64,000 bases of DNA. It comes from Podarcis liolepis. Taxonomy: Eukaryota. Below are positions 5,035 through 56,635 of this stretch, piece by piece. The position numbers were made by a program, and so were the translations under genes. The notes under the pieces were generated by a model. The model was given only the letters and a program-made list of their open reading frames with translations. It was not told the origin of the DNA and did not search any database. Numbering within the stretch: the stretch's first letter is position 1; each line of letters opens with the position of its first letter. The stretch lies in assembly GCA_965112155.1 (NCBI GenBank), contig OZ218105.1. One strand, 5' to 3'.

Positions 5035-5303
5035 CCTTAATCCATAGGTTGGTTCATTCACTGCATATGGAAAACTGAAGTGTGAGATAACATAGACTCA
5101 AACTCACACAACCCTTTTCCAAAAAATTTTTAGCACGATGTATTATAGAAATGGTGGCAGAACAGCTGTAGAGAAAGATCAGGCTGCTGTTGCCTCGGCT
5201 GCGCATCCATATATCCAGTGCATTTCCACAAGAGCACAGAACTGAAACCCATAGTTGGAACTTTGGAGCAGCTTTGCAGAAGATGAGAAAATAAATAACT
5301 CAC

Positions 5304-5362
5304 CCACTGGTTCCTGGTCTCTGGGCCTGAGAGAAACGCCAGTCTGTGTTAGGCTGTGCTTG
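5304..5362 (-). CDS. PCDHG: Protocadherin gamma constant exon 1 (59 bp), [19 protein letters not shown](G)
   Basis: Minus strand reads pyrimidine tract ...tttgtgtttctcttgcag | CAAGCACAGCCTAACACAGACTGGCGTTTCTCTCAGGCCCAGAGACCAGGAACCAGTGG | gtgagt; length and peptide match the mammalian gamma constant exon 1 ([20 protein letters not shown]). Not captured by the ORF track. Confidence 0.97.
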
Positions 5363-8140: not shown

Positions 8141-8855
8141 CTACTACTGAGTTTTTAAAAGCCTAACTGACAAGCAACAGTAGCAACCCAAACAGGACTG
8201 TGCATCCACCTGACATTATGTCCAGCATAGGGCTACCTAAACGTCCCATCAGCACATGGGTTTCCTCTTGCACAACAGGACTCCTCTTGCCTGTTGCCTC
8301 CCCCCTCCCCCTCCTGCTGTGACCACCTAACTCTGTCTGGAGGTTCCTCAACTCTTGGGAGCAGATTTGGGGAGAGTTTGTTGAACAGGTTGAGAGGAAG
8401 AATGGGAGGAGGGAAGCGGGCAGACCCCATTTCACAAGCAGAAATCCTTGCACGGATGGGATGCATGTGTTGGATTACCACCCTATATATTTGTTTTATT
8501 ATACCACCCTTTAATCATATTCCCAGGAGTCCCAGTCAAGAGCAACCACTGCACATGCATTCTCCTCTCACCCCAATTTACCACAGAACATCCTGGGGTG
8601 GGGGGAGGCAGCTGGAGAGAGTGTAGCATGGAAAGAAATGAAAGCCCTACATGCACCTTGTAAAAAGCATAACAGCTGCAAAATGAAGGAACCCCGGGAT
8701 GTCACCCTCCACAACATACACACGCATGCATACACACCTCATTTACCTCTTTACACCTAGCAGATGGAAGTCTATGGTAGATAAATATGGTAGATAAATA
8801 TGGATTTATGGATTGCAAGCAGAAATGTTTTAAGAATCACTTTAGTGTATCTTAC

Positions 8856-11291: not shown

Positions 11292-11900
11292 GCCTGGCTC
11301 CTTTGCGCGCAAGGATGGCCGTCTCCAGCGGCTGCCTCTGCTCCAGGTATCCAGCCCGGGGGTGGCCGCTGCTGCCTCCGGACCCCGCCGCAGTCCGGTG
11401 CCCCCCGCCCCGCCCCCCAGGTCTGCTCCTGGCGGCTCCGGGGTGACCTGAGAGGTGCTGTGCAGCGGAAAGGCGCGGGCTGCAGCTGGAGAGGCGGGAG
11501 GGGGGAGCGGGGGGATTTTAAAGCGCTCGGATCAGCAGCAGCTCATTGGCAAAAGGAGCAGCAGAGAAAAGGGGTTGTGAAATGGATACAGACAAGCGGC
11601 AATTCCCTCCTCGGCGGCGGCGGCGGCAGCAGCAGAAGAGAAGCCCCTTCCCCGAAACGCACACACACCCTGCTGCTCCCCCCTCCCCAATCTCTCTTGC
11701 CACCAGTTTTCCCTCCCTGCGCTTCCCATTCCTTTCCCAGCGCAGCAGAGAGATTTGGAGGGCTGACCCAAGGGAGCCATTGGCCAGAAGAGCTCCCTTG
11801 ATGCCCCTCTTGGTGGAAAAGCAGGAATCGAAGGTGCAGAACGCAGACAGGGCGAGCTGCTGACGGCAGCTGTAACTCCAGGAGGGGGGAGGGGGCTACT
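10720..11900. promoter_or_regulatory. CpG-island promoter of the last C-type exon, with CCAAT box and (GGC)n(AGC)n tract
   Basis: High GC and CpG density over EC1-EC2 and upstream; sense-strand GCCAATGAGC at 11541-11550; no CSE-type GCCGCTGTTGRCC seen. Confidence 0.7.
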
Positions 11901-12160
11901 CTACCCTCCTGCAACCTCTTCACTTCAATCCCCTCCCTCCTCCCCTCCCCCTCCCCCCGCTCATAAAGAAAGAGAGGAAAATTAGGCACACAAAGCTTTT
12001 GAGCAGATAGGTTCAATGTATCACAGCCTATGCTTGAGACCACGCATTGATTCCTCACCCCCACCCCAGGCACTTCTCCTAGGTGCAGGGAAACTCAAAA
12101 GAAAAGGAAGGTGGTGCCATGGCTGGAACAAAATAGGGACACTACATGGAAAATCCTCAC

Positions 12161-14599
12161 CTTGCCAAAGAAGCTGGGTTCAGTGAGATTGCTGCAAGAA
12201 GCTGTCCTAAGTGTCAGATTAGGTTTCATGAATACAAATTCGCTAATGTCTGAGACAGGAGAAAAGCAGGATCTGTATCCACGGGCAGGGGGTCCAGAAG
12301 TGGCCACTTGCACTCCTATCATGGCATCTCCAGGGCTCAGCTGATAATGGCAATGTCCCATCACGTGATCCGAAGCATCTTGAAGCCCACCAGCTTTGCT
12401 TCCACAGCATCCAAAGATGGTAGATGTTGCACGTGAATCACGGCGGAGGCATCGAACTGCCAAGGCCACCAAAGCCATCAGCGAGATGGTGGAAATTGCT
12501 GCCAAGGAGATGATAAGGTACACAGTCAATGTGGGAGGTCCCTCAGTTTCCACTGAGTGAGCTGTTAACCCCAGAAAGGTTTCAGCGCTGCTCTCCTCCA
12601 AGAGCACCATCACAGTGACTGAGGTGGACAAGGAAGGATCACCTGAGTCTTTGACAACCAGGACAAGGTCCTGGGTAGGATTGTCTATGTCCTGCAATGC
12701 TCGCGTGGTCCTCACCTCCCCGCTACGGAGGGCCATGCTGAAAATACCAGGGTCTGTGGCTTGCTCTACATGGTAAGAGAGCCAAGCATTTCGCCCAGAG
12801 TCCAAGTCCACTGCCATAATTTTTGTGATTAAGGCATTGGCTGCAGTAGATCGTGGAATTCTGAACTGCACAACAGAATCTTTCCCAGTAAAGGGGAATC
12901 GAATCCAGGGTGCATTGTCATTCTGATCTAGGAGGTAGATGTGCACCATGATTCTGTTGCAGAGAGGAGGGGAGCCACCATCACATGCCTCCACCAGGAA
13001 CTGGAAATGATTCGTATGCTCGTAATCAAAAGGGCTCTCTGCAAAGACATCTCCATTTGTTGGGTTGATGGAGACATAAGAGGTGAGGTCCTCAATCAAT
13101 CCTTGCCCTGGGCTCGCCAAAACAGAATAAGACAAACGGGAGTTCTGGTCCTTATCAGAATCTGTGGCAGAAACTCTAAGCAGTACCACCCCCACTGGAT
13201 TGTTCTCTTCTATGACGGCTTCATAAAATGGCCTGTCAAAATGAGGTGGGTTGTCATTGACATCTGCCAGAGTTATGGAGAAAGAGGTGTGCTCAGAAAG
13301 AGGTGGATTCCCCAGGTCAAAGGCATAGATGGTGACGTTGTATTGCGGAGTGCTCTCACGATCTAGCTGCTCACTGGTGAGCAAGGAATACTGGTGCTCA
13401 AAGTCTTTCCGAAGTTTGAAAGGAAGGTTTCTGGGCAGATCACACCGGACTTTCCCTTGATCCCCAGAGTCTCTATCCTTGACATGTATCACAGCAACTA
13501 CAGTGCCAGGAGGCGCATCTTCACCCATAGAGCTGGAGAAAGAGGTGAGAATAACTTCAGGTGCATTGTCGTTGACATCTGTGACTTCTACCATAACACT
13601 GCAGTGTTCCTCCATAGTAGGGGAGCCCATGTCCTTAGCCTCCACTTCGATCTCATAGACATTAGCCTCTTCAAAATCCAGGCTCCCTTGGACACGGATC
13701 TCTCCCGTAGTCTCATTGATAGCAAATATCCTGCGCAAGGCTTCTGAGTTATGGCTGCTGAGGGAATACTGCACCTCTCCGTTAGGCCCTTCGTCCAAGT
13801 CTGTTGCGTTCAGCTTAATCACCAGGGTTCCTGGAGGAGAGTTTTCTACTAAGCGGGTATAATAAGTAGGTTTGTCAAAAACTGGATGATTATCGTTGGC
13901 ATCCAGAATGTGGACGGCAATTCGAATAGCGCTAGATTTGGGGGATATGCCCCCATCTTCAGCTGTCAGGACCAAGTGGTGGACAGCGATGTGCTCCCTG
14001 TCCAGGGGTTTCTCCAGTACTAGCTCTGGGAATTTGGTGCCATCTGTACGTGCCTTCACGTTGAGGTTGAAGTTCTCATTGGCGCTCAGGTGGTAGGTCT
14101 GTAAAGTGTTAGTTCCTACATCTGAATCCTGTGCGTGTGGGATGGGGAAACGGGCACCCAGTGCAGCCAGTTCATAGATCTGCAGAGATATTGTGCTACT
14201 TGAGAACACAGGCGCATTGTCGTTGATATCCAGAATCTCCACTTCGATGCGATAGAACTCCACTGGGTTTTCAATAGCAAGTTTGAGATGCAAGAAACAG
14301 CGCAGGTTCTGCCCACAGAGCTGCTCCCTGTCTATTCTGTCATTGACTATTATGATTCCAGTGTTCACATTCACAGAGAAATACTGGGAGTCAGAATCAG
14401 AAAGCACCTGCAGATTGGCAGCTGCAAGCTTTGTCACATCCATTCCTAAGTCCTTAGCAACATTTCCTACAAAGGCTCCTCGAGTGAGTTCCTCTGGGAC
14501 AGAGTAACGGATCTGTGCAAAACAGTCACTCAGAAACAGACAGAAGGCAAAGGCATGCACGAGTCCCAAACGCCAGGCAGAGTTTTCTGTTCTGAGCAT
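12161..14599 (-). CDS. Protocadherin gamma C-type variable exon (extra, downstream of gammaC5)
   Basis: Intact six-EC ORF with TM; first ATG 14599 (MLRTENSAW); phase-0 donor GGCAAG|gtgagg at 12161. Confidence 0.93.
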
Positions 14600-14829
14600 C
14601 TTTCTGAAATCCACAGCAGGAAGCTCTAAAACTGCAAAACAGGAGCTAAATATAGCAGGCAGTATCTCTTTAAACCTCTGGAGGATTCACCACCTATCTC
14701 GAAGAAATATGAAATATACGAGAGGAAAAGGGTCTGTGGTCAGTGTTTACCTCTCTCATTCATTGTTTTGGTTTGAGAGAGATTGACACAGGAGGGGAGT
14801 GGTACACACCGCAGATCTTCAATGCTAAC

Positions 14830-14915: not shown

Positions 14916-15724
14916 CTGGAAGTTGCTACTGTGTGAAAAAGGACCGCGTAACCTGCTGTTTTTAACCTAGAGACACCAGGCTAAACGGCAGACAATGGAA
15001 AACAAAGCCCAAAATCTTGTCTGGTTTTGGCTTCTGTGCTAGCTATAGGACTCTTAGAAGCATACGCTGCAAAGAAATGTTTGCTCTAAAAGCACACTGA
15101 CTCCTCACGTATTACATCCACAACAGAACAGCTGATTTGTCATTTTTATGAGCAAAGATAATTCAATGAATTCTAGGAAACAATAGTTCCTCTTACCCCA
15201 TCCTAAGCTTCCAGATCAATCTCTTTTAGTTATTTCTAGGCTACCAAATTAATATCTAGCTTTATTTACTGGTATTTCAGAAGCCTTAGACTCCACCCTT
15301 CCAATGTAAAAACTCAAGGGAGTGCTTGGTTTTTCTCAGGGAAAGAAATCTAATTGTATGGGGGGGGGGACTTAGCAGTTGCAAAAATATGAAGAGCTAA
15401 CTTTGTGACAGGCAGCATTTGAAGGATGATTTTAAATTATCATTTTCTTATTGTTCACATCCTAGTTCCAGTCCCTGCTCCCCTACCCACTTTCTCTCAT
15501 TAAAAGGCAGCAATTTGTGGGAAGAAATCAATGTAATTTCCCCCCCTCTCCTGCTCTCTCTTTCCCAAGGCGTTATGACTATGTGGTGCAGGGTTAGGTT
15601 ATGAAGAAGGAGGCCCCACCCTATTCTGATAACCGATGAATCAGCCCTCAGTCAAGTTTCAAAGTGTTACTGGAGATACCAGTTTCATGTGGGAAAGGAG
15701 AAAAAGGACAAAATGCCACCTCAC

Positions 15725-18175
15725 CTGCCTGGGATGGTTCAGTGTATCAGTACGAGATAAGAAAGTGTCAAAGTCTCTCGTCAGAGTACTTGGTTGAGGA
15801 TAATCCACAGGCCTCATAAAGGTGAAATCACTTCTGTCCGAGCCGGGAGAATAGCTGGCTCTATAGCCCTGGCTCTGGGAGTCTGTGGGCCTGAGTGTGA
15901 CCTCCATGTATTTCAATGTGCCATCTGAGTTCAGTTGAAGCTTAGGGCTGGCTTGTTTGAAAACATCCCTGGCAGGAGCACCACTCAGGCTGCAGCAAGA
16001 AGAACCCCTGGCTTTTTTATTCCGAAAGCATTTTGCAGACAAGATGATGAACGTAACGAGGGACACAATGCTAACTGCCACCAGCGCAATAATCAGATAG
16101 AGGGTCAGGTCAGATTTTTCTTTGGGGTGAGTCAGGAAATCACGAGACTGGGGCCTTTCCTCAGTTACTTTATCCTCCAATGAGACCACGATGGTGACGG
16201 TGGTAGACAAAGGTGGTTCTCCATTGTCCTTCACTAGTACAAGGATTTTCTGTGCTGGGAGATCTGTTTCCTGGAACTCCCGAACAGTCCAGATTTCCCC
16301 AGTGTAGGGAGCCACTCGGAACAAGGAGGGGTCAGTAGACTGGGAAAGCAAGGAGTAAGAAAGCCAGGCATTGTGGCCAGAGTCTGCATCCACGGCAGTG
16401 ACTTTGGTGACCACATAGCCTGCCGATGCAGACTGAGGGATCCTCTGGATTGCAGACAGTTCCCGACCAGTCACTGGGTGCAAAACAACAGGCGTGTTAT
16501 CATTCTGATCCATTATGAAGAGGTAGACAGTGACACTGGAGCTCAGTTGGGGTGACCCAGCATCATGCACCATGATGGGGATTTGCAGCACCTGCAGCGT
16601 TTCATAGTCAAAAGAGTGCTGGGCATAGACATTCCCATTGTCTGGGTTGACGTAAATGAAAGAAGAGACTGGAGCATCTTGAATGGGGCTTCCTGCCACT
16701 GAGTACGTGAGCCGGGAATTGTCCCCCTCATCAGGATCAGAGGCCGCCACAGTGCATAGCAGAGAGCCAGGTGGATTGTTCTCCTTCAAGAAGGAGTTGT
16801 AGAAGGGCTGAGAGAAGTACGGGGCATTGTCATTAACATCTGAAATGTTCAGCAAGATGGTGACATCTGTGGTTAGAGGTGGGGACCCTGAATCTTGGGC
16901 CGTCAACTTGATAGTGTATCGAGAAACTGTTTCTCTATCCAGTTTCTCAGAGGTAATCAAAGAATAGTGGTTTTCAAAAGATTTAATTTTAAAGGGCAAG
17001 TTTGGTGATATTTGTAAGCTCACCTTTCCATTGGCACCTGAATCTTGGTCTCGCACATTGAAAAGCCCTACCACTGTCTCTAAAGGGGTGTTTTCTGGCA
17101 CGGGGTTTACCAGAGAGGTAAGGAGAACCTCTGGGGGGTGGTCGTTCTCATCTTCAACTTCCATTTGGATTACACAATGGCCTTCCATTTGAGGAATGCC
17201 CTTGTCCCTGGCCCTTACATGAAGCTCATAAAAATGAGATTCTTCGAAATCCACAACTCCTTGGACCCGGATCTCACCTGTGTGGGGATCCAAGCCAAAC
17301 AACTTCTGGATGGAATCAGGTGTGTGGATTCCAAAGGAATACTGTATTTCCCCATTAGAACCCGCATCAGGGTCAGTTGCATTAAGTCTGAAAAGCAAAG
17401 AGCCTACAGGGATGTTCTCCGAAAATCTTATCTTGTACAAAGGAAGGTCAAATGCAGGCTCATTATCATTATTATCCAGGACCACAATGGTGATCAGAGC
17501 TGTTCCTGACAGTACAGGGTCCCCCCCATCACAGGCAGTCAGGATGAGCTGGTGTTCCGATTGTTGCTCTCGGTCCAAAGGTTGCTCTAGCACCAGCTCA
17601 GGTAAAAGCTTGCCATCGTTCACATTCTTTACATTAAGTGAGAAGTGGGGGTTGGGGCTGAGTCGGTAGACACTGACTGCATTGGTCCCCACGTCCGCAT
17701 CATGAGCGCTCTCCAGTGGAAAGCGAGACCCTGTGGCGGCAGACTCTGCTATCCTCAGCACAAGCTTGGGGGTGAGGAAACCGGGGGAATTGTCATTTAA
17801 GTCCAGGATCTCTACCTCCAGGTGAAAGAGCTCCAAGGGATTTTCTATGACTACTTGGACTGGCAAAATGCACCCCGAGCTTGCTCCACACAGGGTCTCT
17901 CGGTCTATCTTTTCATTCACTATCAGAGCACCGTTGGCCAAGTTAACTGCAAAGTACCTCTTGCTCTCCTCAGAGCCCAGCCTCAGCCTGCGCCGGGAAA
18001 GGTCTGCCACCGTTAAGCCCAAGTCCTGAGCCACCTTTCCCACCACGGTGCCCAGCTCCGATTCCTCCACCACGGAATAGTGGATCTGTCCTGTAACCAA
18101 CGCCCGGCTGAACAGCAAAAACAAACCCAGTACTTGCCATTTGAAAGAGGGTTGCCGGGACAAATGTGGCTCCAT
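15725..18175 (-). CDS. PCDHGC5: Protocadherin gamma C5 variable exon
   Basis: KWQVL..GQIHYSVVEESELGTVVG.VAQDLGL..RRLRLGSEE and DGTLKYMEVTLRPTDSQS match human gammaC5 as recalled; donor AGGCAG|gtgagg at 15725, phase 0. Confidence 0.92.
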
Positions 18176-19704
18176 TTCAGAAAAAAGTCCCCTTCCAGAA
18201 GGAGTCTTTGTGATATCCCAGGGATAAGGAGGCTCCAGGACCTGGATGAATGCTGTTTTTCAAATCCCTCGGTATTTCCTTCCAAATGAGTTAAAGTAGC
18301 TTTTGAGCTTGCCTAGCTGCAGCAACAGAATGTTAGTCAGAGAGTTGAGGGGGTGGATTGGGGGAGGGAAGCTGAATTACAGCCATAGCGACGGAGGAGG
18401 AAAGTCAAGGCAGAAAGAGCTGATCCCCCCTCCCCCCAAAATCTGGATCAGCACCTGACTAGATGACAGCTCCATCCACTCTCCACCAGTGACAAGTCCA
18501 CCTACACTCTTAAAGCTGCTGCAGCACATGAAGTTGGGAGACCAGGACTGATCACCCCCATACCTCAACCCTAAATGTAACCAAGAGGCTGGTTTGCCAC
18601 TGGTTTTGGCAGCTAAGTTTAGCAGCTCAGATTCTTGTTCTCAAGGAAACAGCACGTCCGGGAAGCATGAACGGTACAAATCCTCATTGTTCACATTAGC
18701 TAGATTCATTCCATCTCATCTGAACAAAAGACAAACTCTCAGCTGTAGGGGATACAGAACCATAGTCTCTCTGGCAAACAACTGGTCCGATTTTTCACTT
18801 GCAGTGAAAAAGGTATTTGTTACAGTCGAAAAGACGAAAGATAGGGAGAAACTCTCACAGAAAGTGCTTTAGCATTTTGCGACGCAGCTTCAATAAATGC
18901 ATTTAAAACTCTTAGTCATTACCAAGGCAAAACAGACCCTTTCAGAATGTTCATTTTCAAATGCAGACATGGGAACCTCCACCACACAGTGAAGAATGCA
19001 CAATCTTCAAAATTGCTTAAGGCCTCCCAGCTCTATTCATTGGCCTTTCCAAAATTAGAACACCACAATCAATGCAGCAGTATTTCTAAGTAGAACCATT
19101 GTAACCCAAAGACCATGGTGTGGCTTTGAATGTCAGGGACCCACATACCAAGTAGTTTTTAAGCTGTGGTGTTAAGGCACTTTCCAATAATGAAACACCC
19201 AAGTACAGATTCACAGAACTGTGATGGACTCAGTGAGTGGACCATTTTTCTTAAGATGGGGTGCCTCATTCTTGATGCATTCCCGACTTATGATGCTCAG
19301 CACTTTTTCTTTCCCCTCTTTCCACCAAGCTTTCAAAAACATCAGAAAAACAAATATTTGACAACCTCCCCTGGAAAATCATTTAACTGCTGGATTTATT
19401 TTTCGGTTAGAAACTTTTTGCTGCTTGTTAACCTAAATCTAAGTACCAGTAGTTTAAAAGCATTACTTCTTGCCAAATATCCACAGGGTGAACAATTGCT
19501 AATCTTCCCAAGCTTCTTCTAAAATAGCCTATCTCCTTGAAGAATCTCAAATCCAACAAAATGCTTTTTAATTTACAAACTGACCACCTTAACACAAAGG
19601 CTGCCTGACATTGCCATTGCATCTGTGACCTCTATCCCTGGAGATTGTTACAGAATCACAGGGTGCTACACGACATAGTTATAGAACAGTATTTCATGCC
19701 TCAC

Positions 19705-22155
19705 CTCGTTTGGCTCTCGGGAAAGGCTGCAGGCCAGAAGTGTGCCTGTGCTGTTGATATCCTGCTGAGTGACTGGTGTAGCTATCCTGAAATTCCTCCC
19801 TTCTGAAAAGTGGGTCTGGCCAGGCCTTAGGAGGGTAAAAGGAGAAACAACATCTCCCCCAATGAAGGCTGTAGGGAATTCCATTTTTTCCTCCTGGCTC
19901 AAGCGTACTGAGAACGTGTCAAAGTGTCCTCCCACAGGAATAGAGTTCCTACCCTTCAGGTCGCTGGTCCAACCCACATCTGAGTGTCTTCCTTTCAATC
20001 TTTTAAGACACTTCATAGCTAAAAACACAAAGGCCAGAGCAGAAAGTCCTGAGATTGTGATTAGAGCAATAATGAGTTGCAAGGTCAGGTGAGACAGCCC
20101 TTCTTGTTCCATGCTGGACTCTCTGAGGTCTGCTGCGCCCAACTCATGCTCATGCTCTAGATTAAGAATCAGAGTGGCTGTGGCAGACAGAGGTGGCTTC
20201 CCATTGTCCAAGATCTCAACAACCAACTCTTGGGAAGGGGCGTCTTGTTCCAGGAGGGCTCGGACGGTTCGGATCTCTCCTGTGAACGCTGAGACTTGGA
20301 AAAGGCTTGGGTCTGTGGCTTGCTGCAGCTTATAAGAAACCCATGCGTTCTGCCCAGAGTCTGCATCCACAGCTGTGACTTTGGTTACCAGGTAACCTCC
20401 TTGTGCAGAAAAAGGAACTGGCTGCTGGGCTAGGACCCCCTTCTTGGTTACAGGGTATACAACGAGAGGAGCATTATCATTCTGGTCTATGATGAAGATG
20501 GAGACAGTCACATTGGCACAGAGTGGAGGAGAACCATTATCCTTAGCTTGAATCTGGAAAACCAGTTGCTGGGTTTGCTCATAGTCAAATGAGCAGCCAC
20601 TGTAGATAGTACCGTTCTCCATAACATAGACATAGGAGGAAATGGGCATTCCATTTATGATATGCTCCACTAATGAATAAGACAGGTGTGAGTTCTGCCC
20701 CAGATCAGGGTCAAAGGCAGATATAGAAATGATTGGCAGCCCCAGAGCATTGTTCTCAGTTACGAGGGTCTCATATGCAGGCTGTGAGAAGTGGGGTGGG
20801 TTATCGTTCAGGTCAGATATATTTACAAGGAAGTTTCTTTGACTGGAGAGAGGCGGAGAACCAGAATCCGTAGCTGTGATCATAACTTTGTACTGTGAGA
20901 TTTCCTCCCGATCTAGGGGGCCACTGGTGATCAAAGAGTAGTGGTTCTTGAAGGAAGGTACAATCTGGAAGGGGACATCTGCAGGGAGATGAAGCTGTAC
21001 TTCTCCATTTTCCCCAGAATCTGCATCACTGACTCTGAGGAGCCCTGCTGTGGTACCTGGGGGAGCATCTTCTGGTATGGTGGTGGTGAGGGAAGTGAAC
21101 CTAATGATAGGCTCATTGTCATTCACATCCACTACCTCCACTAAGATGTTGCAGTGTGCATCCATGGAAGGTGACCCTTGGTCTTTGGCCCTCACATCAA
21201 TTTCATACAATGTGTCATCTTCGTAATCCACACTTCCCAGGACTCTTATCTCCCCAGTCTCCTCATTAAGGCTGAACATTTTCCGGATTTTCTGTGGAGT
21301 GTGGCTGCTGAAGGAGTAGGAAACTTTCCCATTTGCCCCCTCATCATTGTCTGTAGCTTGTAAAAGTATCACAAGGGCCCCCACTGGGGCATTTTCTAGT
21401 AGGCTAACTTTGTACACCGACTGGTTAAAGACAGGTGGATTGTCATTGGCGTCTATGACTGACACGAGAATCTTTGCTGTCCCGGATTTAGCAGGAACTC
21501 CTCCATCCAGGGCTGTAAGCACCAGGGGGTAGCGCTGCTGCTGTTCTCTATCCAGCGCCTTCTCTAACACCAGCTCAGGTTTGCTGCCGCCTTTATGTGA
21601 CTTAACACTGAGGCTGAATTGTCCACGTGGACTCAGCTGGTAGGTGCTGACTGAATTCATGCCAACGTCCAAATCTTCAGCACTTTCCAGGGGGAAGCGG
21701 GCCCCTGGCATTGCAGACTCTGCTATCTCCAAATGGGTGAGACTGGTAAGAAAAACTGGGTCATTGTCATTCACATCCAAGAGCTCAACTTCCACACGAT
21801 GGGAGGCTGTTGGGTTTGCAAGTAGGAGCTCCAGATAGAGCAGGCAGTGTAAGCTGGGCCCACAAAGCTGCTCTCGGTCCAGCCGTTCTTTCACGACCAA
21901 GACACCATTTGGCACCTTGGCTTCGAAGTACTTTTCAGCAGAGCCAGCCATGATCTGCAGCTGTCGGGAGACCACCCGGGCAGCATCTAGACCCAAGTCT
22001 TTAGCCACATCCCCAACAAAGGCCCCAGGAGCTAACTCCTCAGGAATCGAATAACGGAGCTGGGTCATCTCTCCAGCACACTGGAGAGAGACAGAAACCA
22101 AAAGCAAAGCTCTTACTTGCCATGGCAGGAGTAGTCTTTCTTCCAGAGACAGCAT
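19705..22155 (-). CDS. Divergent C-type gamma variable exon between the gammaC4 relic and gammaC5 (orthology uncertain)
   Basis: Intact six-EC ORF; first ATG 22155 (MLSLEERLLLPWQV); donor AACGAG|gtgagg at 19705, phase 0. EC1-EC2 lack gammaC4 hallmarks, though EC5-TM has some C4-like words (FDYEQTQ, DLRESS). Confidence 0.9.
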
Positions 22156-23039
22156 AATGTCGCCAGAATTTCCTCTTCCTTTGCTGGACTTCTGTCCTCT
22201 CTGATTCCAGCACAGCCAAGGAAACAACACAGAATCCCGGGTTAGATCACGCAAGGGATGAGAAAGCGGCGCACCATCTGCATCTTTTCTCTGTTTTTCT
22301 TCCACAGAAAACAGCAGCGGTGCCTAGTCCGTATCGGAATCAAGAGGGGAGGAGCTTTGTTGTCCATCAAAGCAGATACAGGGCTCCTGGAATCAAGGAA
22401 GCGCCTGGCTGTTTGCAATGGACCACTCATTCTCCCCCTCCCCAGCTCCAGCAATGGGGTGGGGGAGGTCTTAAAGCGCCAGTGCAAATGTTGAAGAGCT
22501 GGGAGCCCATTCGCCAGCTGTCAGTGACTGGATTTCCCAAGATAATTATATGAACAATAAATCCTATGTCATTACAAGCTTTTGAATTCATTAATGAATG
22601 TCACAAGCATTTAAATTCAATAATGAACACTCTTTGTTTGGAATGGTTGGGGTTATAAGCTAAACCAGCAAACTGCATATTTTGCAGATTTTTTAAAAAA
22701 TAGAATGCAACAAACACCAGTGGCTGCACAATTAAGTGATATACTGCCATTTGCTGGATATAAGATCATGTTAAAAGATCCATTGACTGTCTGCCTGAAT
22801 TTCCTTTAAATGAATGGCATTCAATAATCGATGCAGGAGAGCTCTTCAAAGCTCATTCCAAATGGAGTATACTAGAGTCTCTCCATATACCCTTTCCTGA
22901 ATTTCAGGAGTTTTGCAGCCAGTGCACAAAACAGAATAAACCATGACATCACAAAGGAAATTTTTAAGCCTCTGGAGTGAAAGGTTAGGAGGAGCAAGGT
23001 TAAAAAGAGTTTTATGAGCAAGAACCTGGTCCCTGATGT

Positions 23040-24350
23040 TCCCAACAAACAGCTTCCATAGTGGAGACAACTAAGATAATAGTTAGGGAAGGGGTCAGGT
23101 CAAGGAGATTCATGGACTTCCTGGAAAAGATGAAAGAAATCTAGGAATAGAAGTATTTTCTCTCCCCTAAAGGTAGACAATGCCTTCTGAATGTTGTCAT
23201 GGTAGACTTCAGTGAAGAGGTAGATGAGGCACACTGCTGTTGAAAAAGTGGTGTCCTCTGTCTTATGTGCTTGCACTGGAAGCACCTGGATTTGCTCCTA
23301 GTGGCATCATGTGTGGTTGAGAAGCTGGGCACCTCCCGTGTGTGAGATTTCACAGTAGAAATGAAACAGACAGAATGTATTTACGGTGATGGTTCTTCTC
23401 CAGGAGTACTGTGCAGATAATATAGGTTGTTCGTATTGCATTTGTTATTCTGTTAGCTAGATTGGTCTTTACTGTCCAGAGGAGTATTTGTGACTAAAAC
23501 CTGGTTTTGAAACACGGCCCATGGCTTTAAACGCAAGCATCTGGGAATACTGGCAATCACTGCTGCTCCACTGCCTCTGGAGTGAGCTGCTTGCTATGTG
23601 CAGAGACATGCTCTCTGGCACGGACAAAGTTTGTTTTGACCAAAAACAATATCTTTTGGGTATTTGGGGACATAAAAAATGTGCACCACCATATGTTCCA
23701 TGGCAAAGACGTCCACCTCATTTTATCATTAAACTTATAGCTTCTATTTTATAGGCAAGCCTCCTTTTCACCACAGCTGTGACTTCCCAATAGTCACATA
23801 TGACCCAGCTGGAGTATAGTTGCATCGGGTGGAGTCCCCCTATATATGGAATTGCCATACTAAGTAAGGTGTTGCTCCAATATAGAGCTTTCAGGACCAA
23901 GCAATGCTCAACTTCCTTAATTCCCGGTCAATGTTTTTCAAAGACGCAAGTTCAGATCTCTTCACATCAACAGACAAGAAAGTCTTAACAAGTAAGTGAT
24001 GATGGAACTGCTGCTTGTTCTACTAACCAAGGAATGTTAATTTCTCTGATTCTAAATATCTCTCTGTGTCACAGGCCCTGGAGAAGGTAGGAATCGTCAG
24101 CACCTGCATTTCCCACTTCTGCCTGATACATTTCCATGGATCTTCTTACATCCATTTTGACTCCATGAAGGAGCTTGACTCACATGTACACAGGGACTCA
24201 CAGTTTACAGGTGCCTTTCAAAGAAGTAAAAATCTATTTCCACAGTTATCATCTCACTAATCAACTATTATATAGCAGTCGTTTGGGGATGCAATTTCCC
24301 GTTCTTTGCTATGATTTCTATGTAACCTAAACTCACCCTTCTAGTCCACT
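23040..24350 (-). pseudogene. Decayed gammaC4-like variable exon (frameshifts, stops, large deletions)
   Basis: Colinear minus-strand motifs: SLGYI (~24330), PVNCESLC (24188-24211), EMYQAEV (24114-24134), DVKR (23957-23968), DRE..HCLVLKAL (~23885-23930), YKFND..GG..AMEH (23693-23739), VPES (~23615), FQNQVLVTNTPLD (23474-23512), TM-like LTPSLTIILVVS (~23065-23100). Confidence 0.75.
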
Positions 24351-27300
24351 TGGACTAGTGATGGTCAGGGATTGGCACAGTGCCTGGGCAGAGAGCGCAG
24401 AACAATTAGCAGCATCCACAAAATTCCTGCAGGGTGGAAGTACCTTGAGATTCTGGACTCAGGCTACATCAAGAGCAATTTTCTTCAGCTCAAGAGTTTG
24501 TATTTGTATATTACAACACCAAAAATCACAATATCAAATACATTCCTTGACTTACTGATTCTGCCTTTTCTAATGCCTGAGAATACACATTAAAAAAACT
24601 TAAGGATACTATTCTTTATAATGAATGTTCTTATCTTGATAATACCAATGTCTTTATACACTCTTGCTTCTCTTGAATTCACCTGCACATAACATTCAAC
24701 TTTGCAATCCTATTTATTTTCAGAATCCATTTAGTCGCAAATAGCACGCATACTGTACAGATATTTCTAACTAGTTATATACAGTCTTGGTTCACAGAGC
24801 TACGAACGCTGCATAGCAAGCTAAGTGGCTTTGAAAGATGCAAAGCCACTTGGCTTGGTTTAACTAACACACATGAATTATACTACAGGACACTGTGCTA
24901 AACTTCACAGGAAACAGTATTTGATGAGAAGCATTCAAATCAGTTCCTAATGCACACTTGTGCCATTTAACTTAATGGAATGGAAAAGAAATTCTGTATT
25001 CTAAACCCTTGTCTTTAATGAAATCACAATAAATATTTGGTGCACAGGAAAACATTTCAACAATGGAAATGGGAAACCTTGTAATTAGGATTTGAGAGGA
25101 GTGGGGAGACTGAAATCTCACTTCAAAATCCGAAATATGATTGAGTTTGATTGCTTTAGACTTTTTGGACAGTTGATGACTATTTTCTAGGTTCAAGATT
25201 GTAGACAAGCAAGCAAGAGGGAAATTTTAAATGTTGGGGGTCAACATACAGTAAGTTTCATTACATGCTCCCATCCCCCTACACTAAACTCATTTGTGAA
25301 AGGCACCATAAGATCTTGAGTGGGGTCTCTGGGCAGGGATTGTGTATGTTTATTGCTGTCAAATCTCATCCAGTGGCAGATGGCTAGACAGCGTGATGTT
25401 AGCCAGCTCTTTCCGCTCTTTGTCTTCCATTATCTTTACAGAAAAACAAATATGGTTACTTTCTTGCATTGCTCTAGATTAGATGATAAAGTTTCTGATC
25501 TTGGATTCTCCTGTGTTGCTTTGGCTGCATATATGCTCATCTTAATTTTCAAAGTGAGATTTCTTCTTTCCAATCTCAATGTTCTATAATTCAGGGATGC
25601 TTGTTACAAACTAGAAGACCAGTGTGTTTGGCAGTAAACCCCACAGCATATGAAGCTGTCGCCTGCATTTATTTCCGTGCACAAAGCGCAGCAGGTCCTG
25701 GCCTCTTGCAACATATTTTCAAGCACATATGATTTTAATAAGTACAGCCTCCTCAACTGAAAATGTAATGAACACACTAAATGTTCACATTGTTTCAGTA
25801 ATACGTGAAGGAGCCCTGATTATATTTGGTGAGAGTCTGCCCTGGCTTTTGCATATTTTAGAGCCAGATGGCCTACTAATGAAAAGCCTCTGTGCATCAT
25901 TCTAACTTTTGTTAAAAACACTCAAGAAACTAATGGTTCTGCCTGTACAGATTAAGTGTGGGATCTGGTGCAGCTTTAAGAGTACGTCAGCTTAGGGTCA
26001 TCATATTGTGCTGGAATTGCTAATGCCTATTGACAGGACACACACGGACACACAAACACACCTCTCCTCCGCTGTCTCTTTTGCCCGCCCTATTTTTCTG
26101 ATCATAGTCATTTTCTTAACAATCTCCCCAGACTATGTAATTTTGGGTAGGAAAACGTAGCTAAAACAATTTCCAAGGATCTCAGGGTTCACATGTCAAC
26201 CATTTCAAGCAAAGCAACACGTATGGAAGTTAAGAAAGCCTAATTATGAATTGATAACAGCAATGCAACCCTTTTAGCATCAAAATAGTACTAATAAACA
26301 ATAATAATTTAAATCTCAACAACAAATTAAAAGTACAGATGAAATCACTAATCAGTTATCGATGAATTAACATCATCATCATCATTATTATTACATTTAT
26401 AAGGCTGCCATATAGCAGTTTTCTGGGTGGCTCACAAACCAAACCAAGCAGTAAAATACAGCATATTAAAAACCTATGATGAATTAATTAAAAGTTGATG
26501 CACAATTTAAAACTCAAGGTATAAAATCAAAGGAAGCTACATACAAAATATCAATTACTGTTGAGAATGTGTATATATATTTCCCACACAGCCGAAAGGT
26601 TAGGTACCACATTGCTCTAAAACATGTTTGGATATCAGATGCCAAATACTAAATGCCAAATTAACCAGGTACAAAGACTCAGAACCAGTTCACTGAAATG
26701 ATGGCCCTGAAAGCTATTCACAAACTATCAGGGGTGAGAACTGGCCTGGAGCCAGACTCTTTCTTGCAACCTCTGCTTCACCCTTGCAATCTCTGGGCTT
26801 CCTGGTCCTTCTTCCAGCACCCTCTCCACATAAAGCTGCAGTTTATCACTGTACCCTAAAACAACTTCCTGCCTATAGCATCTAATTGTGTAGCAGAATG
26901 CACCCTGAGCATGTATCTACACTGCAGATTCAAACTGGTGCAGCAAAATCATTCCCAAGGAATTATAGGAATTGCGCTTCTGGCTCAGATCTCATTGAGG
27001 TTGTACAGCTGAGTCTGGGCTGTACCACTTCAGACTGCAGGTGGGGACTCAAGATGGCTGTATGCTCCTCCATGCCAGCCACCCCACGGTTAGGATCCAT
27101 CTTCCTGACATCTAGCTTTGACAGAGCTCTGAATTCTTTGTACGCAGGAACATTCAAAGATGTGGGTTTCATCTGCAATCTGCAATGGTACAGCCTAGAA
27201 ACAGATTAACCATCTTGGTGAGAACTGGGCCTCTGTGAGGAAATCTTACAAACAAGACACACAACGTGCTCTCTTCAGAGTGAAAATGTTCATGAATATT

Positions 27301-28152
27301 TCAAAGGAAACTAGCATGTACATACAATCCCAGCAATTAACTTATTCACTGCCAGCCTTCTGCTGTTACACAATAACAAGATAAAATGAGTGTCACACGA
27401 GTGCTACCTAATGTTATCAGTGATCAGAATATGAGAGGAGCCTGGGAATGAAGGGAATTTGATGCCTCCTGGGCAGTTTGCCTATGCCTGGTATTTTAGG
27501 GGGGAAGACTGTTGGACAGAATGGGGATGGGGTGCAAGACAACAACATTTAAGTCAAGCTGAAAGTAGCCTGCCACCTGTGATTCCCAAAAGAAAGCTGA
27601 AGCCTGAAACTTTAGGTAAAACCTTGAGACTCAGAAACCCTAAAGCACAATAGCTTTGTGCAGCTGGTGGATGAGTCAGAAAAAAGCTTACCTATGTAGG
27701 TGTTGGCCAATGTGCTTTGTAGGCATTGTGAGAAAGAACCTGGCTATTGTTGTTGTTATTACTCCTCCTTCTCCTCTCTACACAGTAGCTTTTCTGGATT
27801 GCAGGCAAAATCTCTAGTTAATATTTACTTTCATACAATAACATATTGCATTATCTTTTCACTTATTGACTTTTGATATGAACTCTATGATGGGGCTGCC
27901 TATGTTTCCCTGGACATTCAAAAGGGGACACATTATCTTAGTATCGTAGCATCTCTACTATCTCCCACCTGATCAGGGACAACATGGGGGGGGGAGCTGA
28001 GCCCCTCCAATTAAGCAGGGGAATGGGCCCCCTCAATTTTATGCGGCCTGCAAGCCACCAGAAGGCAATCCTGTATAGGGAAGGGAAGTTTTTTATATAT
28101 GTTGGAAGCTGCCCAGAGTGGCTGGGGCAACTCAGTAAGATGTGTGGATATA

Positions 28153-28411
28153 CCGTATTTTTCGCTCTATAAGACGCACCAGACCACAAGATGCACCTAG
28201 TTTCTGGGGGAGGAAAACAAGAAACAAAATATTTTGAATCTCAGAAGCCAGAACAGCAACAGGGATCGCTGCGCAGTAAAAGCAGCAATCCCTCTTGCTG
28301 TTCTGGCTTCTGGGATAGCTGCACAGCCTGCATTCACTCCATAAGACGCACACACATTTCCCCTTACTTTTTAGGAGGGAAAAAGTGAGTCTTATAGAGC
28401 AAAAAATATGG
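28153..28411. mobile_element. Tc1/mariner-superfamily (pogo/Tigger-like) MITE nested in an older repeat
   Basis: TIRs ccgtatttttcgctctataagac / gtcttatagagcaaaaaatatgg with TA duplications on both sides. Confidence 0.8.
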
Positions 28412-30111
28412 TAAATAGTAAAATTATCATTATGGAATGGGACGTCCCTATTTTCATTGGAGAAATGTTGGTATGACAGAATGCACAAGCCTCTTTGCAT
28501 ACTTTTCACATTTTGCACTTGCTATAGGGTGGGGTATTCTTTAACATCTACCCACACTTATTGTGTAATAATATTTACAGAAAATAACTTATAGTGAGTA
28601 CCTGATCTTAGACCAACTCACCACAGGAAAGATGCATCGTGTTTTGTAGAAAGAACAGATTGGCTAAATAACAGAAATTCCAAGGACTAGAAAATGAAAC
28701 AAGCAGGGCAGAAAAGTGCACTGGATGGAAGAGGGAAATGGCAGCTCTTTAAGACACCAGTTATTCTATAGCCTGGTGTCCAAACAACTTACTCATCAAC
28801 CACAGCTCAGACGTCACTCATTTGCTAAAAACACTGAAAGGTGGGGATAGCTGGGCTGGCACACTCACTCACTTAGAAGGGTACTCACACATTTTCCTTG
28901 ATAACTTCATTTCTAGAAGGGCTAGGCTCTTACATTTTTTCAATGAAAACTCAAAGTCTGGGTCCTCTGACAAGCATAGGCCCCAGAGCAATATCCGCAA
29001 CCCCCTCGATTTCTTAAAATAACAAGCACAGGGCCCTTCATTGGGAACAGAAGCACCAAACCAGGTGGCAACAGCTGCCACCTTCTCCAACGGTCCCAGG
29101 GCCTCTGGGCCTCACTTCAACATAGTGGTGCTATATTGGGGCCCAGAAGCACTGAGGGGAAATGAAAACGGCATTTCTCAGCATCAGGGCAAGGGAGCAC
29201 CATCTCTCCTCACCACCCCCATGCTGCTGCCCATCCTTGCCTCCACCTGCTGCGGCCTCCAGGTAAACTAATTTGGGGGTGCACACCTGGTGGCTGGTCC
29301 TGTGTGTAGGCCTCCTTCTGAAAGGCATCCATGCTCAGGCTCTTTCCCAGAAGTCTCTTTTGTATAGAAGAGCATCTTCCCTGGAAGGCTGCTGCCATTG
29401 CTTACATAGAAAGTGCCATTTCCCCCTACCAAATTAGTCTGAATGAGAAGCCATCAGAGCCCTGTTCTAATGTCTCTTCTTCTGCTACTCCTACTCCTAC
29501 CCCTACTCCTACTCATGTTTGGCTACATAGAGAATAGGTTCAATTCCACCATACACATAAGGAAAAGGAATAAGTCTTACATTTCCACCCCATCATAGAT
29601 GAATATCAAACAGGCATACATCAGAGGCTAGGCCCCCAAGGAAATGTTGAAGGTGATCTCCCTTTAGCGTCTTGAAGAAGCACCCAAGTCAAAAGGCCTC
29701 CCAATACATATCCAACCCACTATTTACACAGCATTACTGTTTCCTTGCGTATGATTTTTCGTAAAACATAAACTTACTGGGAGCTATCATTCTTCAGAGG
29801 CAATGACTATGCAACCCCACAACAGCTGACCACATTGATCTGACCCAGAGCAGAAAGAACAAACCACCCAACTCCATGTAATGTAGGAAGGAAACAACAC
29901 ATGCACAGGAGTTAAACAGGCGGGGCTCGTAATCATGCTATTAAATGACACAGCACTAGATGGAGACAGAAAACAGGGGGGAAAAATGTGTTCTACAGGA
30001 ACTACCCTGTTTCCGGGTAGAAAGACATTGAGTGGTCTGCCTTTAAGTCAACTTAAGCTCAGAGCTGGGATTTCCCAACTTTACTGGAGAAGGACAACAA
30101 GCATACATTAC

Positions 30112-32556
30112 CTCAGAGGGCACCAGAAGCCTCTTATTTGTGCTTATTAGCTGGTTATATATTGCAGGGTCACATCTTGTGATAGTGCTCTGGCGGCTCC
30201 CCATAGGGCTGGGAGCAAAGGGCATTTTGTACAGAAGTTCACTCTGGCGAGAGTCCGTGGTGAGGACCTGCTGGTAGAAGTTTGGAGGAGTAAATCCACT
30301 CCGCACAGTGTCTATGTGGTTGAAAGGCCCCGGGGTTCTATAAAGGGAGCTTCTGGAGGCTTTGAATATATCCTTGGATTGCCTCCACTTGTAAAATTTA
30401 TAAATCCCCACCCCAACCACGGTGACAAAGAAGGCCACTGAGATCAAGATGACAGCAATGATTAAATAGAAAGTCAAGTGCTTCTTTGTTTGGGGTGTAG
30501 TGGACACAGCAGTCAAGTCTGTCAGTGTCTCCCTAGATGTCTCTGCTACATCTACAGCAAGGGTCACTGTGGAGGACAAGGCAGGCTCCCCATTGTCTTT
30601 TATTAAGATGAGCAATGTTTGCTTGCGAGAATCTTCCTCTTGCAGAGAACGAGCTGTGCTTACCTCCCCAGAATGCAGCCCCACAGTGAACAGCCCTGGG
30701 TCAGTGACCTGAAGGAAGGAATACGAGAGCCAGGCATTGTAACCAGAATCTGCATCCCAGGCCACAATTTTTGTGACCATGTAGCCAGGGCTGACTGTGG
30801 GTGAGATGACTTCTGAGAGCGAAGAACTGTTGTTTGAGTTTGGGTATAAGAGCCTGGGTGCATTGTCATTCTGATCTGTGACAAAAACATTGACAGTGAT
30901 GTTAGTGGCAAGAGGCGGGAGGCCAGCATCACGAACCTGGACCACTAGCCTGAACTCCATGGTGCCCTCATGGTCCAAGGGGACTAGGACATATATGCTG
31001 CCATTTTCCCGGTTAATAGAAAAATACCTGCCCGCCAAGTCTCCCGAGGACATGGGACTATCCAGGATGGAGTAGGAAAGGTGGGAATTCCGGTTCAGAT
31101 CCGGGTCAGAGGCACTGATGTTAAAGATCAGGGTCCCTGGAAGGTTGTTTTCCTCCACATACACATCATAGGAGGATTGTGGAAATTTAGGAGGGTTGTC
31201 ATTTACATCAGATACTTTAACCAGTATTTGCTTCTCTGCCATGAGTGAGGGTGTGCCTGCATCCTGAGCTGTGATGGTGATGTTGTACTCAGAGACAAGT
31301 TCCCTGTCCAAGGGTCCTTTGGTCTGTAAGGTATAATAGTTTTTAAGGGAAGAGCTGAGGGCAAAAGGGATCCCAGAAGGTATAAAGCAATTTACTAGGC
31401 CATTGTCACCAGAGTCCTGATCCGTGACACTCAGCAACGCAATCACAGTCCCTGGAGCCGCGTCTTCTGGTATTGGGCTGTACACCGACGTCACTGTTAT
31501 TTCTGGGGTGTTGTCGTTCACATCCACAATCTCTACCAGCACTTTGCAATGAGCGACACCAGGATTTGAACCCTTATCTTTTGCCTGGATATAAATCTCA
31601 TAAAATTTGGCTTCTTCAAAATCCAGCAACCCCTTCAGCCTCAGTTCTCCAGTGGCAGAGTCTAGGGCAAAGAGCTGTCGGATTCTGGCAGGGGTGTGAC
31701 TGCTGAAAGAGTACACAATCTCCCCATTGGGACCTTCATCCAGGTCGAAAGCTCTGGTTTGGACAACCAGGGTGTTCAAGGCTGTGTCTTCTTTCACGCT
31801 GGCTCTGTAGATGGACTGGTTGAAGACAGGGGCGTTGTCATTTGCATCCAGGACGTCAACCAGCACCTGCAAGCTGGCCGATCGGGGTGGGGTCCCTCCA
31901 TCCATCGCCGTGAGAACCAGCTGCACTTCCCGCTGCTGCTCCCGGTCCAGCTCTTTCTCCAGCACCAGCTCCGCATACTTCGTCCCGTCGCCTCGCGTCT
32001 GCACGTCCAGCACGAAGTGCGGGTTGGCGCTGAGCTGGTAGGTCTGCAGAGAGTTGCTTCCCACGTCGGGGTCCTGCGCGCTCTCCAAGGGGAAACGCGC
32101 TCCGGGGGTCACCGACTCGCTGATCTCCAGCTTCATCTGCTTGCTCTGGAAAGCCGGGTCGTTGTCGTTGACGTCCTGGATCTCCACGGTCACGCCGTAC
32201 AGCACCAGCGGGCTCTCGGCCACCACCTCCAGGCTCAGCGCGCATGGCGAGAGGGCCCCGCAAAGTTCCTCGCGGTCGATGCGCTCGCTCACCAGCAACT
32301 TCCCGCTGCCCAGGTCCACCTCGAAGTACTTTCGTCCGCCGCCCGACACCACGCGGAGGTTCCTGGCGGGCAGCTGGGCGAGATCGAGGCCCAGGTCGCC
32401 CACCACGTTGCCCACCGAAGAGCCCCTGGGCATCTCCTCGGGGATGGCGTAGCGCGTGGCGGCGAGCGCCCGCTCCGAGACGCCCAGCCACAGCCAGAAG
32501 CCCACGACGGGCAGCCATCGCGCTCTCGGCCGGCTCCTTCCCGCGGCGCCTCTCAT
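30112..32556 (-). CDS. PCDHGC3: Protocadherin gamma C3 variable exon
   Basis: EIYIQAKDKG.NP..AHCKVLVE, ITVTSVYSP, SSLKNYY, VAWDADSG and YKWRQS..SSLYRTPGP match human gammaC3 as recalled; first ATG 32556; donor TCTGAG|gtaatg at 30112, phase 0. Confidence 0.95.
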
Positions 32557-33450
32557 CTCCCGGCCTCGCAAAGTTTCTTTCTTTTCGCGGGAGCGGCGGG
32601 GAGGTCCCTCTAAAAGTTTTCAGCCGTCCCTTCCATGCGGCCGCGACCCTGCCCGGTCCAGGCTCGCCTCGCGCGGACTTTGGGGGTCGGGCATTGCTCG
32701 GCGGCGCGGCGCTCCGGCGGCGGGACTGCGCTCCGTCTGGTGCTGGCGCTCAACTCGCGGCGGCGGCGGCGGCGGCAGCGTCCCACTTCGCGCTGCTTCG
32801 CCGCCAGCATCGCCGGGTCAACAGCGGCGCGCAGAGTCGCGACCATTAACTGCAGGAGAGGCCGCTCCCGCTCCGCCTCCCCGGCTCGCCGCCGGGACTC
32901 CGAGGCACGAGGCGCACGGCTCCATCCAAGCTGGGCTGGCGGGGCCCGGTGACTTCTTTTTTGGGGGCTGGGGCGGGGGTGTTCCTCGGTGAAAGGCTTG
33001 CGGAGGCTGCCCCCTAGGCTGCACAGCCCTCCCCGCTCCGCCGCCGCGAGAAGGAGCGAAGGGAAGCGCGGACCAAGGAGGCAGCGAGGGCTCATTGTTC
33101 TCGCTGGGGAGCGTGGAGGAAGGGCTGGACCCCGGACGCTTCCGAGGGATCGGGAGAGAGATGCCTGCCTGCCTGCCTCCGGTGCCTCCGCCTCTGGCTC
33201 CCTCGCTTACGCTCTCCCGGCGTGGCTGCTCTGTGGGGCAGCCCAGGGCTCCCCATGCACGGCACTGCTCAGGGAGAACCCGCAAGCCCCCCAAGGCGGT
33301 GTAAGCTTCCCCTCTCCCTCTGCTCCCCACAGTGGCGTAGCGTGGGTTGGGGTGCAGGGGGGCCCGGCCGCACCGGGCGCAACATCTGGGGGTTAGGGTT
33401 AGGGGGCGCAAATTACTTGCCTTGCCCCGGGTGCTGACAACCCACGCTAC
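31840..33450. promoter_or_regulatory. gammaC3 CpG island
   Basis: Very high GC and CpG over EC1-EC2, 5' UTR and promoter; (GGC)n tract at ~32759-32776. Confidence 0.85.
32815..32855 (-). promoter_or_regulatory. CSE / CTCF site of the gammaC3 promoter
   Basis: Sense strand TGCAG...ctctgcgcGCCGCTGTTGACC, the Pcdh conserved sequence element with its upstream TGCAG module. Confidence 0.8.
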
Positions 33451-44325: not shown

Positions 44326-44910
44326 GCAACAAATAAGACAAGGTATTTAAAATCAACACAAAGTAAAACTGATTTGTAGCTACATATTATTAAGTTGGTT
44401 GCGCTTGTAATAAAGTCTAGGAACACTATGCTAAACCCAGAACTGCAGTATAACATCTGATCAGTAGAGGGCAGACATAACCCAACAAATTTGTACCAAA
44501 GAAGAAATTACATTCTTGCGATAGAATGATTGTCCTGTTACCTTTGAAGAATAAAGGGACAATTCTGACATTGTTAAATGTCTTCTTGGGTCCATTACCC
44601 TCAAATCTAAAGGAAAGTTCAAGCTTACCAGGTTCCACGAAAATATCTCACTTTATGGAAACACCCATACCTTATAGGTGCAGAAGACTACTGTATATTC
44701 TATGCCAAGATACTACCTTTTGCTTAGATTATTCATCAGGGTTCCTCCCCCCTAAAAAAGAAGGATCTTAACTAAGCAGTGTTCGAAATGCAGGTGAATT
44801 CTGGGTGCCACCAAGCTGCTTTTCTTCACTCTGAACAAACAGGTTAGAAAACGGAAATATTACAGCCTTGCAGTCTACAGTATGTCTTAAAATGTATCTG
44901 TGATTCTCAC

Positions 44911-56439: not shown

Positions 56440-56635
56440 TGTATTGATCCCCACAAACTGTGAGATGGGAGCACCACTGAAATTCACACTCCCCGACTCA
56501 ACCAGCTGAGAATTTCTCCATTTGTGCAACCTGATGGCCAGTAACACAAGGAGGAAGATGAGGAACAAGCAGGAGACAAAAGCCACTGCAAGGACCAGGT
56601 AGAAGGTGAGGTTAGATGGAGGAGCAGATGATGGA
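56440..56635 (-). pseudogene. Isolated gammaA-like transmembrane and juxtamembrane fragment
   Basis: Reads SSAPPSNLTFYLVLAVAFVSCLFLIFLLVLLAIRLHKWRNSQLVESGSVNFSGAPISQFVGIN, matching the gammaA pattern LTLYLVVAVAAVSC..RLRRW...SHFVGVD; ectodomain absent. Confidence 0.85.

Follow-up and report, generated by a model that had tools for sequence, protein, structure and literature searches.

A putative, nearly erased protocadherin-gamma variable exon downstream of gammaC3 in a lacertid lizard

In mice, gammaC4 is the sole gamma isoform needed for neuronal survival and viability, and among the PCDHG genes of humans it alone is constrained (Garrett et al. 2019, PMC6957209). Biallelic human PCDHGC4 variants lead to a neurodevelopmental syndrome (PMC8553613), and the survival function maps to the variable cytoplasmic domain (PMC12559083). 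A first-pass annotation of the DNA analysed here had cited the mouse and human biology, correctly so (PMC6957209, PMC8553613), and had proposed that a dead gammaC4-like exon lies at the C4 position of this cluster. In Xenopus, a 1:1 gammaC4 orthologue is not reported (PMC4978886). According to the available text of Jiang et al. 2009 (PMC2764143), the anole possesses gamma-c3 to c7, of which 'c4', c6 and c7 are without a human orthologue, and human gamma-c4 is without an anole orthologue. In the anole tree, coelacanth gamma-22 is the partner of Ac-gamma-c4 and gamma-24 that of Ac-gamma-c7; human gamma-c4, anole gamma-c6 and coelacanth gamma-21 are left without direct orthologues, from which a differential loss of C-type genes was deduced. 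The same text counts 14 pseudogenes at varied stages of decay in the anole clusters, describes tandem duplication followed by decay as the rule in protocadherin clusters, and reports that C-type genes seldom duplicate. The lack of a gammaC4 orthologue in lizards is already published in that text and is not new. The further statement that this lineage 'must' cover the survival function otherwise is something that we can only infer, and it already followed from the 2009 anole result.

Layout of the array

The window, that is, the whole 64,000-nt stretch of DNA that was analysed, carries on its minus strand the 3' end of the Pcdh-gamma cluster of a lacertid lizard (Podarcis). Eight intact ORFs of ~820-880 aa lie on this strand, each of which is a clustered-protocadherin variable exon. 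Along the minus strand, gammaC3 is followed by the flagged stretch, four intact C-type exons and constant exon 1. The five-gene arrangement from gamma-c3 to c7 is identical to that of the anole in the available text of Jiang et al. 2009 (PMC2764143). The features of this part of the array are as follows.

30043..32571 (ORF limits), minus: intact gammaC3 variable exon, upstream neighbour of the relic; bird and ostrich gammaC3 are 68-80% identical
23040..24350, minus: putative eroded protocadherin-gamma variable-exon relic; chain alignment z of 3.4-7.5, piecewise searches all negative
19705..22155, minus: intact C-type exon of the anole 'Ac-gamma-c4' type, downstream neighbour of the relic
15659..18175, minus: intact gammaC5 orthologue; 465 bits over only 320 residues against mouse gammaC5 EC1-3 in the PDB
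12095-14614, minus: intact C-type exon of the 'gamma-c6' type, with orthologues in turtle and bird
8772-11312, minus: intact C-type exon of the 'gamma-c7' type, with orthologues in turtle and bird
5303-5365, minus: gamma constant exon 1; tblastn with an exon-protein tail, 95% over 21 aa

The position of constant exon 1 at 5303-5365 means that the window includes the 3' end of the variable array in full; this exon follows the last variable exon at a distance of ~3.4 kb. The first-pass annotation had claimed that no intact gammaC4 remains here, and in the complete 3' array down to constant exon 1 an intact orthologue is indeed absent. The four C-type exons match mouse/human gammaC4 EC1-4 with 436-468 bits at about 50% identity, the level of paralogues, and hmmsearch found no cadherin-like match between gammaC3 and the constant exon beyond the intact exons. 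Motif searches among 370 retrieved proteins and 1003 exon-like domains found no gammaC4, and the ESM Atlas gave generic protocadherin clusters only. A region of GC 0.65-0.72 at 31,800-33,000, spanning the gammaC3 5' end and promoter, is CpG-island-like, and the relic has nothing comparable.

The downstream neighbour, exon 19705-22155, is 98% identical to Podarcis raffonei 'protocadherin gamma-C4-like', 78-86% to counterparts in other squamates, 66-73% in turtle, 54-57% in coelacanth and 52-54% in fish and sharks; the ray-finned fish and shark counterparts are annotated 'protocadherin-10-like'. The matches listed for it comprise lizard and turtle orthologues, fish and shark C-types, fused predictions and giant cadherins. 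It is an ancient exon, with no bird or mammal orthologue among the matches listed. Its splice donor at 19705 joins constant exon 1, and a few RNA reads of a relative map to it on the expected strand. Equating this exon itself with gammaC4 was rejected, given its paralogue-level identity of about 50% and a contradicting anole tree in the available text of PMC2764143.

Exon debris is also present elsewhere on the minus strand of the window.

~48,770-50,190, minus: better-preserved variable-exon pseudogene between intact exons 44887-47457 and 52777-55263
56,500-56,682, minus: isolated juxtamembrane/TM-like protocadherin fragment, 22.8 bits
63,867-63,992, minus: isolated EC1-like protocadherin fragment at the window edge, 17 bits

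The pseudogene gave a tblastn E of 1e-16 at 28-45% identity and collinear hmmsearch matches of 48.5, 45.6 and 13 bits. The two fragments are likely further exon debris.

Signal and decay in the stretch downstream of gammaC3

The stretch at 23040-24350 lies on the cluster strand inside the tandem array, between exons 30043-32571 and 19705-22155 and upstream of the constant exon. As had been described, it is without a long ORF, the longest stop-free piece being 82 aa. The words that had been read from it by eye, namely SLGYI, PVNCESLC, EMYQAEV, SSSIITY, DVKR, DRE..HCLVLKAL, TIGK, YKFND, AMEH, VPES, FQNQVLVTNTPLD and PSFSTTHD, all occur on the minus strand at or near the places and in the order reported, distributed across all three frames. 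The gammaC4 words given for comparison (PIDREALC, EMYRAEV, LDVKKRS, YEFDVRARDGGSPAMEQH, LPES and FRNQFSLVTAGPLD) are genuine and readable in the alignment to PDB 7jgz; a further one, HLGYV, occupies the signal-peptide position of gammaC4, outside the 7jgz crystal construct. A signal-peptide reading of SLGYI in the relic is not supported, because this word overlaps the EC1-aligned piece at 24292..24324.

Taken singly, the pieces of the relic do not exceed chance. In tblastn, the eight intact exons of the window gave a best E of about 4 against the relic and no match with E below about 0.03 against 22306-30042. Searching six-frame fragments with a 128-sequence cPcdh profile (hmmsearch) yielded at best 4.3 bits in the relic, which is the noise level, and Pfam (E<=10) on 10 stop-free pieces reported no cadherin family (PF00028, PF08266). 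Three pieces submitted to phmmer against the PDB returned nothing or chance matches to SCAP and Sel1, and none of them found 7jgz (gammaC4). Among calcium and linker motifs, one IDRE and one PLD are left, and the DxNDN Ca-binding motif is absent. A repeat or transposon was also rejected as the identity of the relic, which shares no repeat with the rest of the window and shows no transposon domain in the Pfam run on 10 pieces. The piecewise tblastn and hmmsearch runs readily recover the pseudogene at 48.8-50.2 kb and miss the relic. Thus, the relic, if it is a pseudogene, is far more decayed than an ordinary one.

The collinear whole moderately exceeds chance once frameshifts and deletions are permitted. 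This result depends on our own script, a local profile-versus-DNA alignment that allows frameshifts and free forward jumps, with the remaining intergenic DNA of the window (both strands and reversed copies) and dinucleotide shuffles as controls. Aligned with the 128-sequence profile, segment 22600-24600 scored 34.1 on the minus strand, against a mean of 17.8 (sd 2.8, maximum 26.8) for 224 genomic controls and a maximum of 23.9 for 150 dinucleotide shuffles; with looser penalties it scored 54.7 against a control maximum of 51.9. The plus strand of the same segment stayed at the null mean (17.6 and 27.0). An independent tetrapod-only profile of 18 sequences gave z=5.4 on exactly 23040-24350, with 0/164 controls as high, and z of 4.3-5.4 on the 500-nt EC1-EC2 part, with 0/304 as high. 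A second algorithm, HSP chaining with a diagonal-shift penalty, gave z of 3.5-4.25. Overall, z ranged from 3.4 to 7.5 across two profiles, two algorithms and three window sizes (100-304 genomic controls and 150 shuffles), and the relic was the top or equal-top window in 12/12 combinations of profile, parameters and method, with z up to 7.5 against shuffles. In two parameter sets, one control matched the observed score (1/100 and 1/132). The pseudogene at ~48.8-50.2 kb, as a positive control, scored 279/241/219 against null means of 80/33/18 in three parameter settings. The Gumbel tail per window is about 4e-5 to 3e-3, which after multiplication by ~60 pickable windows yields a family-wise p of only about 0.002-0.15; the stretch had been chosen by eye for the tested property, and significance is inflated accordingly.

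The best path requires at least 12 frame changes or stops, with about 30-45% of the exon length gone, and comprises the following pieces.

24292..24324, minus: YIEIIAKNGKL, aligned with the EC1 strand consensus YFEVNLENGHL in path tracebacks, 14.7 bits
24114..24208, minus: VNCESLC...EDP, a frameshift, then MEMYQAEV, aligned with the end of EC1 (IDREQLCG...ENP LELYRVEV)
23883..24018, minus: EC2-like block with TSSSSIITYLL, (VDV)KRSELASLKNIDRE and KEVEHCLVLKAL in the path alignment; EC5 by one method
23693..23742, minus: YKFND, a frameshift, then VDVFAMEH, likened in the first-pass annotation to the EC3 motif YEFDVRARDGGSPAMEQH; a weak match, and the profile path puts YKFND elsewhere
23459..23512, minus: FQNQV-LVTNTPLDSKDQS, aligned with the EC4 motif F.N..SLVT.GPLDRE, 14.2 bits
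22920..23294, minus: weak juxtamembrane and TM-like matches (..TEDTTFSTAVCLI; KISFVMSWFILFCAL), singly at noise level

In the EC1-EC2 part, the DNA spacing of the matched motifs agrees with the protein spacing; the 80 nt from ..CESLC to EMYQAEV, for example, fit the 26 residues that separate the two in gammaC4. The assignment of pieces to EC repeats varies between methods, as for DNA 24004-23921, which is placed in either EC2 or EC5. Such path instability is unsurprising when the signal is weak and the protein consists of repeats. The TM-like stretches match no better than noise, and a cytoplasmic domain is not detectable in the relic.

The stretch evolves free of coding constraint. We compared contigs of two close relatives over 19600-25500. 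At 22925-25500, they differ from the window by 1.6% substitutions and seven indels (1, 3, 14, 1, 2, 1 and 1 nt), whereas the piece with the intact exon differs by 1.0% and has no indel within the exon. Frame-breaking indels thus accumulate in the relic and are absent from the neighbouring exon, as expected for a stretch that is released from constraint. At 23,423, both relatives carry 14 additional bases (AGGGCAATGAT[T/C]AC), which represent either a recent deletion inside the relic in the genome of the window or an insertion in the relatives. The RNA reads, six in total and all on the intact exon, are too shallow to inform on the relic. The GC content of the relic equals the intergenic level. 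In simulations of neutral decay of three intact exons, the observed score was reached once 45% of the length was deleted and about 0.4-0.5 changes per site had accrued, and the signal vanished at 0.7 changes per site or more; this calibration is rough, as the simulated exons themselves belong to the profile. The relic would accordingly stand at the limit of what can be detected and be very old, with an age of very roughly 10^8 years.

Taken together, we favor the reading, with a probability of about 0.7, that the stretch is what is left, almost erased and without function, of a single protocadherin-gamma variable exon. The source, formerly a full exon, would have followed gammaC3 in the ancestral array and preceded the next C-type exon. 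Coding constraint may have been lost at about the age given above, after which substitutions, frameshifts and deletions would have piled up until the GC content reached background and no piece could be recognised singly. Judged by its position, the exon may correspond to coelacanth gamma-21, to mammalian gammaC4 or to both.

Isoform identity and alternative readings

The proposal of a dead gammaC4 at the C4 position stands in part: a dead, eroded protocadherin-like exon is probable given the collinear signal, but its gammaC4 identity is not supported in particular. Reading the gammaC4 residues off the printed alignment to 7jgz, we scored them manually on paths optimised without gammaC4. On the path of the first profile (136 positions, EC1-EC4), gammaC4 reached a BLOSUM62 score of 215 with 46 identities (about 34%), against 171-203 for the eight intact exons of the window; on the tetrapod-only path it reached 177, against 149-175. 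Hence gammaC4 does match better than any intact exon here, as had been claimed, in this hand scoring. However, 217 is reached on the former path by fish 'protocadherin-10-like' proteins and by a single squamate orthologue of exon 19705-22155, and C-type proteins of skate and chimaera, which are absent from the tetrapod profile, reach 199 and 194 on the latter. Only on six blocks that the first-pass annotation had itself picked for their match to gammaC4 does gammaC4 lead all comparators, its words scoring 143, whereas 302 other exon sequences average 87 and reach 118 at most. Nor are the words specific to gammaC4, as had been stated, for each has a near-equivalent in another isoform: EMYQAEV is equally matched by skate ELYQAEI, a DVKK-type word is found in turtle gammaC5 (LDVKKLK), and gamma-c7 carries GSPAMEGH and FQGQYSLVTAGPLD as well as SLVTAGPLD. 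In free-path pairwise chaining, z was 3.0-4.65 for gammaC5, 3.2 for gamma-c7 and 2.6-3.0 for skate, and 0.7 for gammaC3 and -0.7 for the downstream neighbour 19705-22155. The low values for both neighbours indicate that the relic is not a recent copy of either, and an origin as a neighbour's copy was rejected. Regarding synteny, the relic does lie between gammaC3 and gammaC5, in the order gammaC3, relic, 'gamma-c4-type' exon, gammaC5; the extra exon leaves the slot ambiguous. An assignment of the relic to gammaC4 on these sequence comparisons is accordingly not established.

Among more specific readings, the relic might be the dead orthologue of mammalian PCDHGC4, a gene that would have been present in the amniote ancestor and lost on the way to lacertids; we consider this possible but doubtful. 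It is consistent with the slot after gammaC3 and before gammaC5, as in mammals, with coelacanth gamma-21 standing at the same slot without an assigned orthologue, with the lead on the six blocks and with the hand scores above all eight window exons. It is weakened by the selection of those blocks, by the fish, skate and chimaera scores on the unbiased paths, by the near-equivalent words in skate, turtle gammaC5 and gamma-c7, and by the failure of any relic piece to retrieve 7jgz in the PDB. Furthermore, 1:1 orthologues are unreported in Xenopus (PMC4978886) and anole (PMC2764143), to the extent of the text available from these sources, which implies that gammaC4 as such may be a form of the mammalian lineage. 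Should the PCDHGC4 assignment hold, squamates would have given up the one gamma isoform that is indispensable to mice and humans, and another C-type isoform, such as the ancient exon 19705-22155, might conceivably carry the neuronal-survival function, a suggestion that we hold as tentatively as the assignment itself.

That the stretch is ordinary intergenic DNA, in which a reader primed for protocadherins spotted cadherin-like words by chance, appears rather unlikely. The uniformly null piecewise searches, the inflation of significance by selection by eye, the control windows that equalled the observed score in two parameter sets and the instability of the path between methods all speak for it. 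Chance accounts poorly, however, for a top or equal-top rank in every one of the 12 combinations with z up to 7.5 against shuffles, for the confinement of the signal to the strand of the cluster, for the protein-like motif spacing in EC1-2, and for its location in an array known to shed exons. Quite improbable is a dead lineage-specific duplicate, either of the gamma-a/b type or copied from gamma-c5 or gamma-c7, in place of an ancient C-type gene: it would agree with the highest pairwise chain z for gamma-c5 and gamma-c7, with the gamma-b-type exon 52777-55263 equalling C-types on the profile path, and with the usual tandem duplication and decay of these clusters (available text of PMC2764143), but all intact exons show similarly low identity (24-29% on the path), none of the exons resembles the relic at the DNA level, the level of decay implies an age comparable to or above that of the squamate radiation, and C-type genes are reported as little prone to duplication in the same available text.

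The relic is thus probably a real, almost erased dead protocadherin-gamma exon, in a position compatible with a lost gene of the gammaC4/gamma-21 type. As it stands, it is one more very old pseudogene in a cluster already known for many. If real, it would provide physical evidence for the 'differential loss' of C-type protocadherins, so far deduced from trees only. A firm link to gammaC4, if one could be made, would put a date on the disappearance of a gene that mammals cannot do without and make the lizard C-type isoforms candidates for the survival function; lizards would then represent a natural experiment on how the neuronal-survival function is encoded.

Comparison with known systems

The closest described system is the anole cluster, which resembles the window in its five intact gamma-c exons in the same order and its many variable-exon pseudogenes at varied stages of decay (available text of PMC2764143). 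Between gamma-c3 and 'gamma-c4', the available text of that paper mentions no relic, and the decay of the Podarcis relic goes far beyond that of the single-indel pseudogenes stressed there for anole. Within the window, the pseudogene at 48,770-50,190 is similar to the relic in being a dead cPcdh variable exon on the minus strand between intact exons; it differs in being detected by plain tblastn and hmmsearch, whereas the relic falls below both. Coelacanth gamma-21 is likened to the relic by position only: in the available text of PMC2764143 it stands between gamma-20, the orthologue of gamma-c3, and gamma-22, which is orthologous to the lizard 'gamma-c4' exon, and it is intact, unlike the relic. 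Mammalian PCDHGC4 (7jgz; Garrett et al. 2019, PMC6957209) and the relic both lie downstream of gammaC3 and have the residues EMY.AEV, DVK.RS, AME.H, PES and F.NQ..LVT..PLD in common, with about 34% identity over the 136 hand-aligned positions, which is no higher than for fish and shark C-types. In PCDHGC4, the survival function resides in the cytoplasmic domain (PMC12559083), the very domain of which the relic retains no detectable trace.
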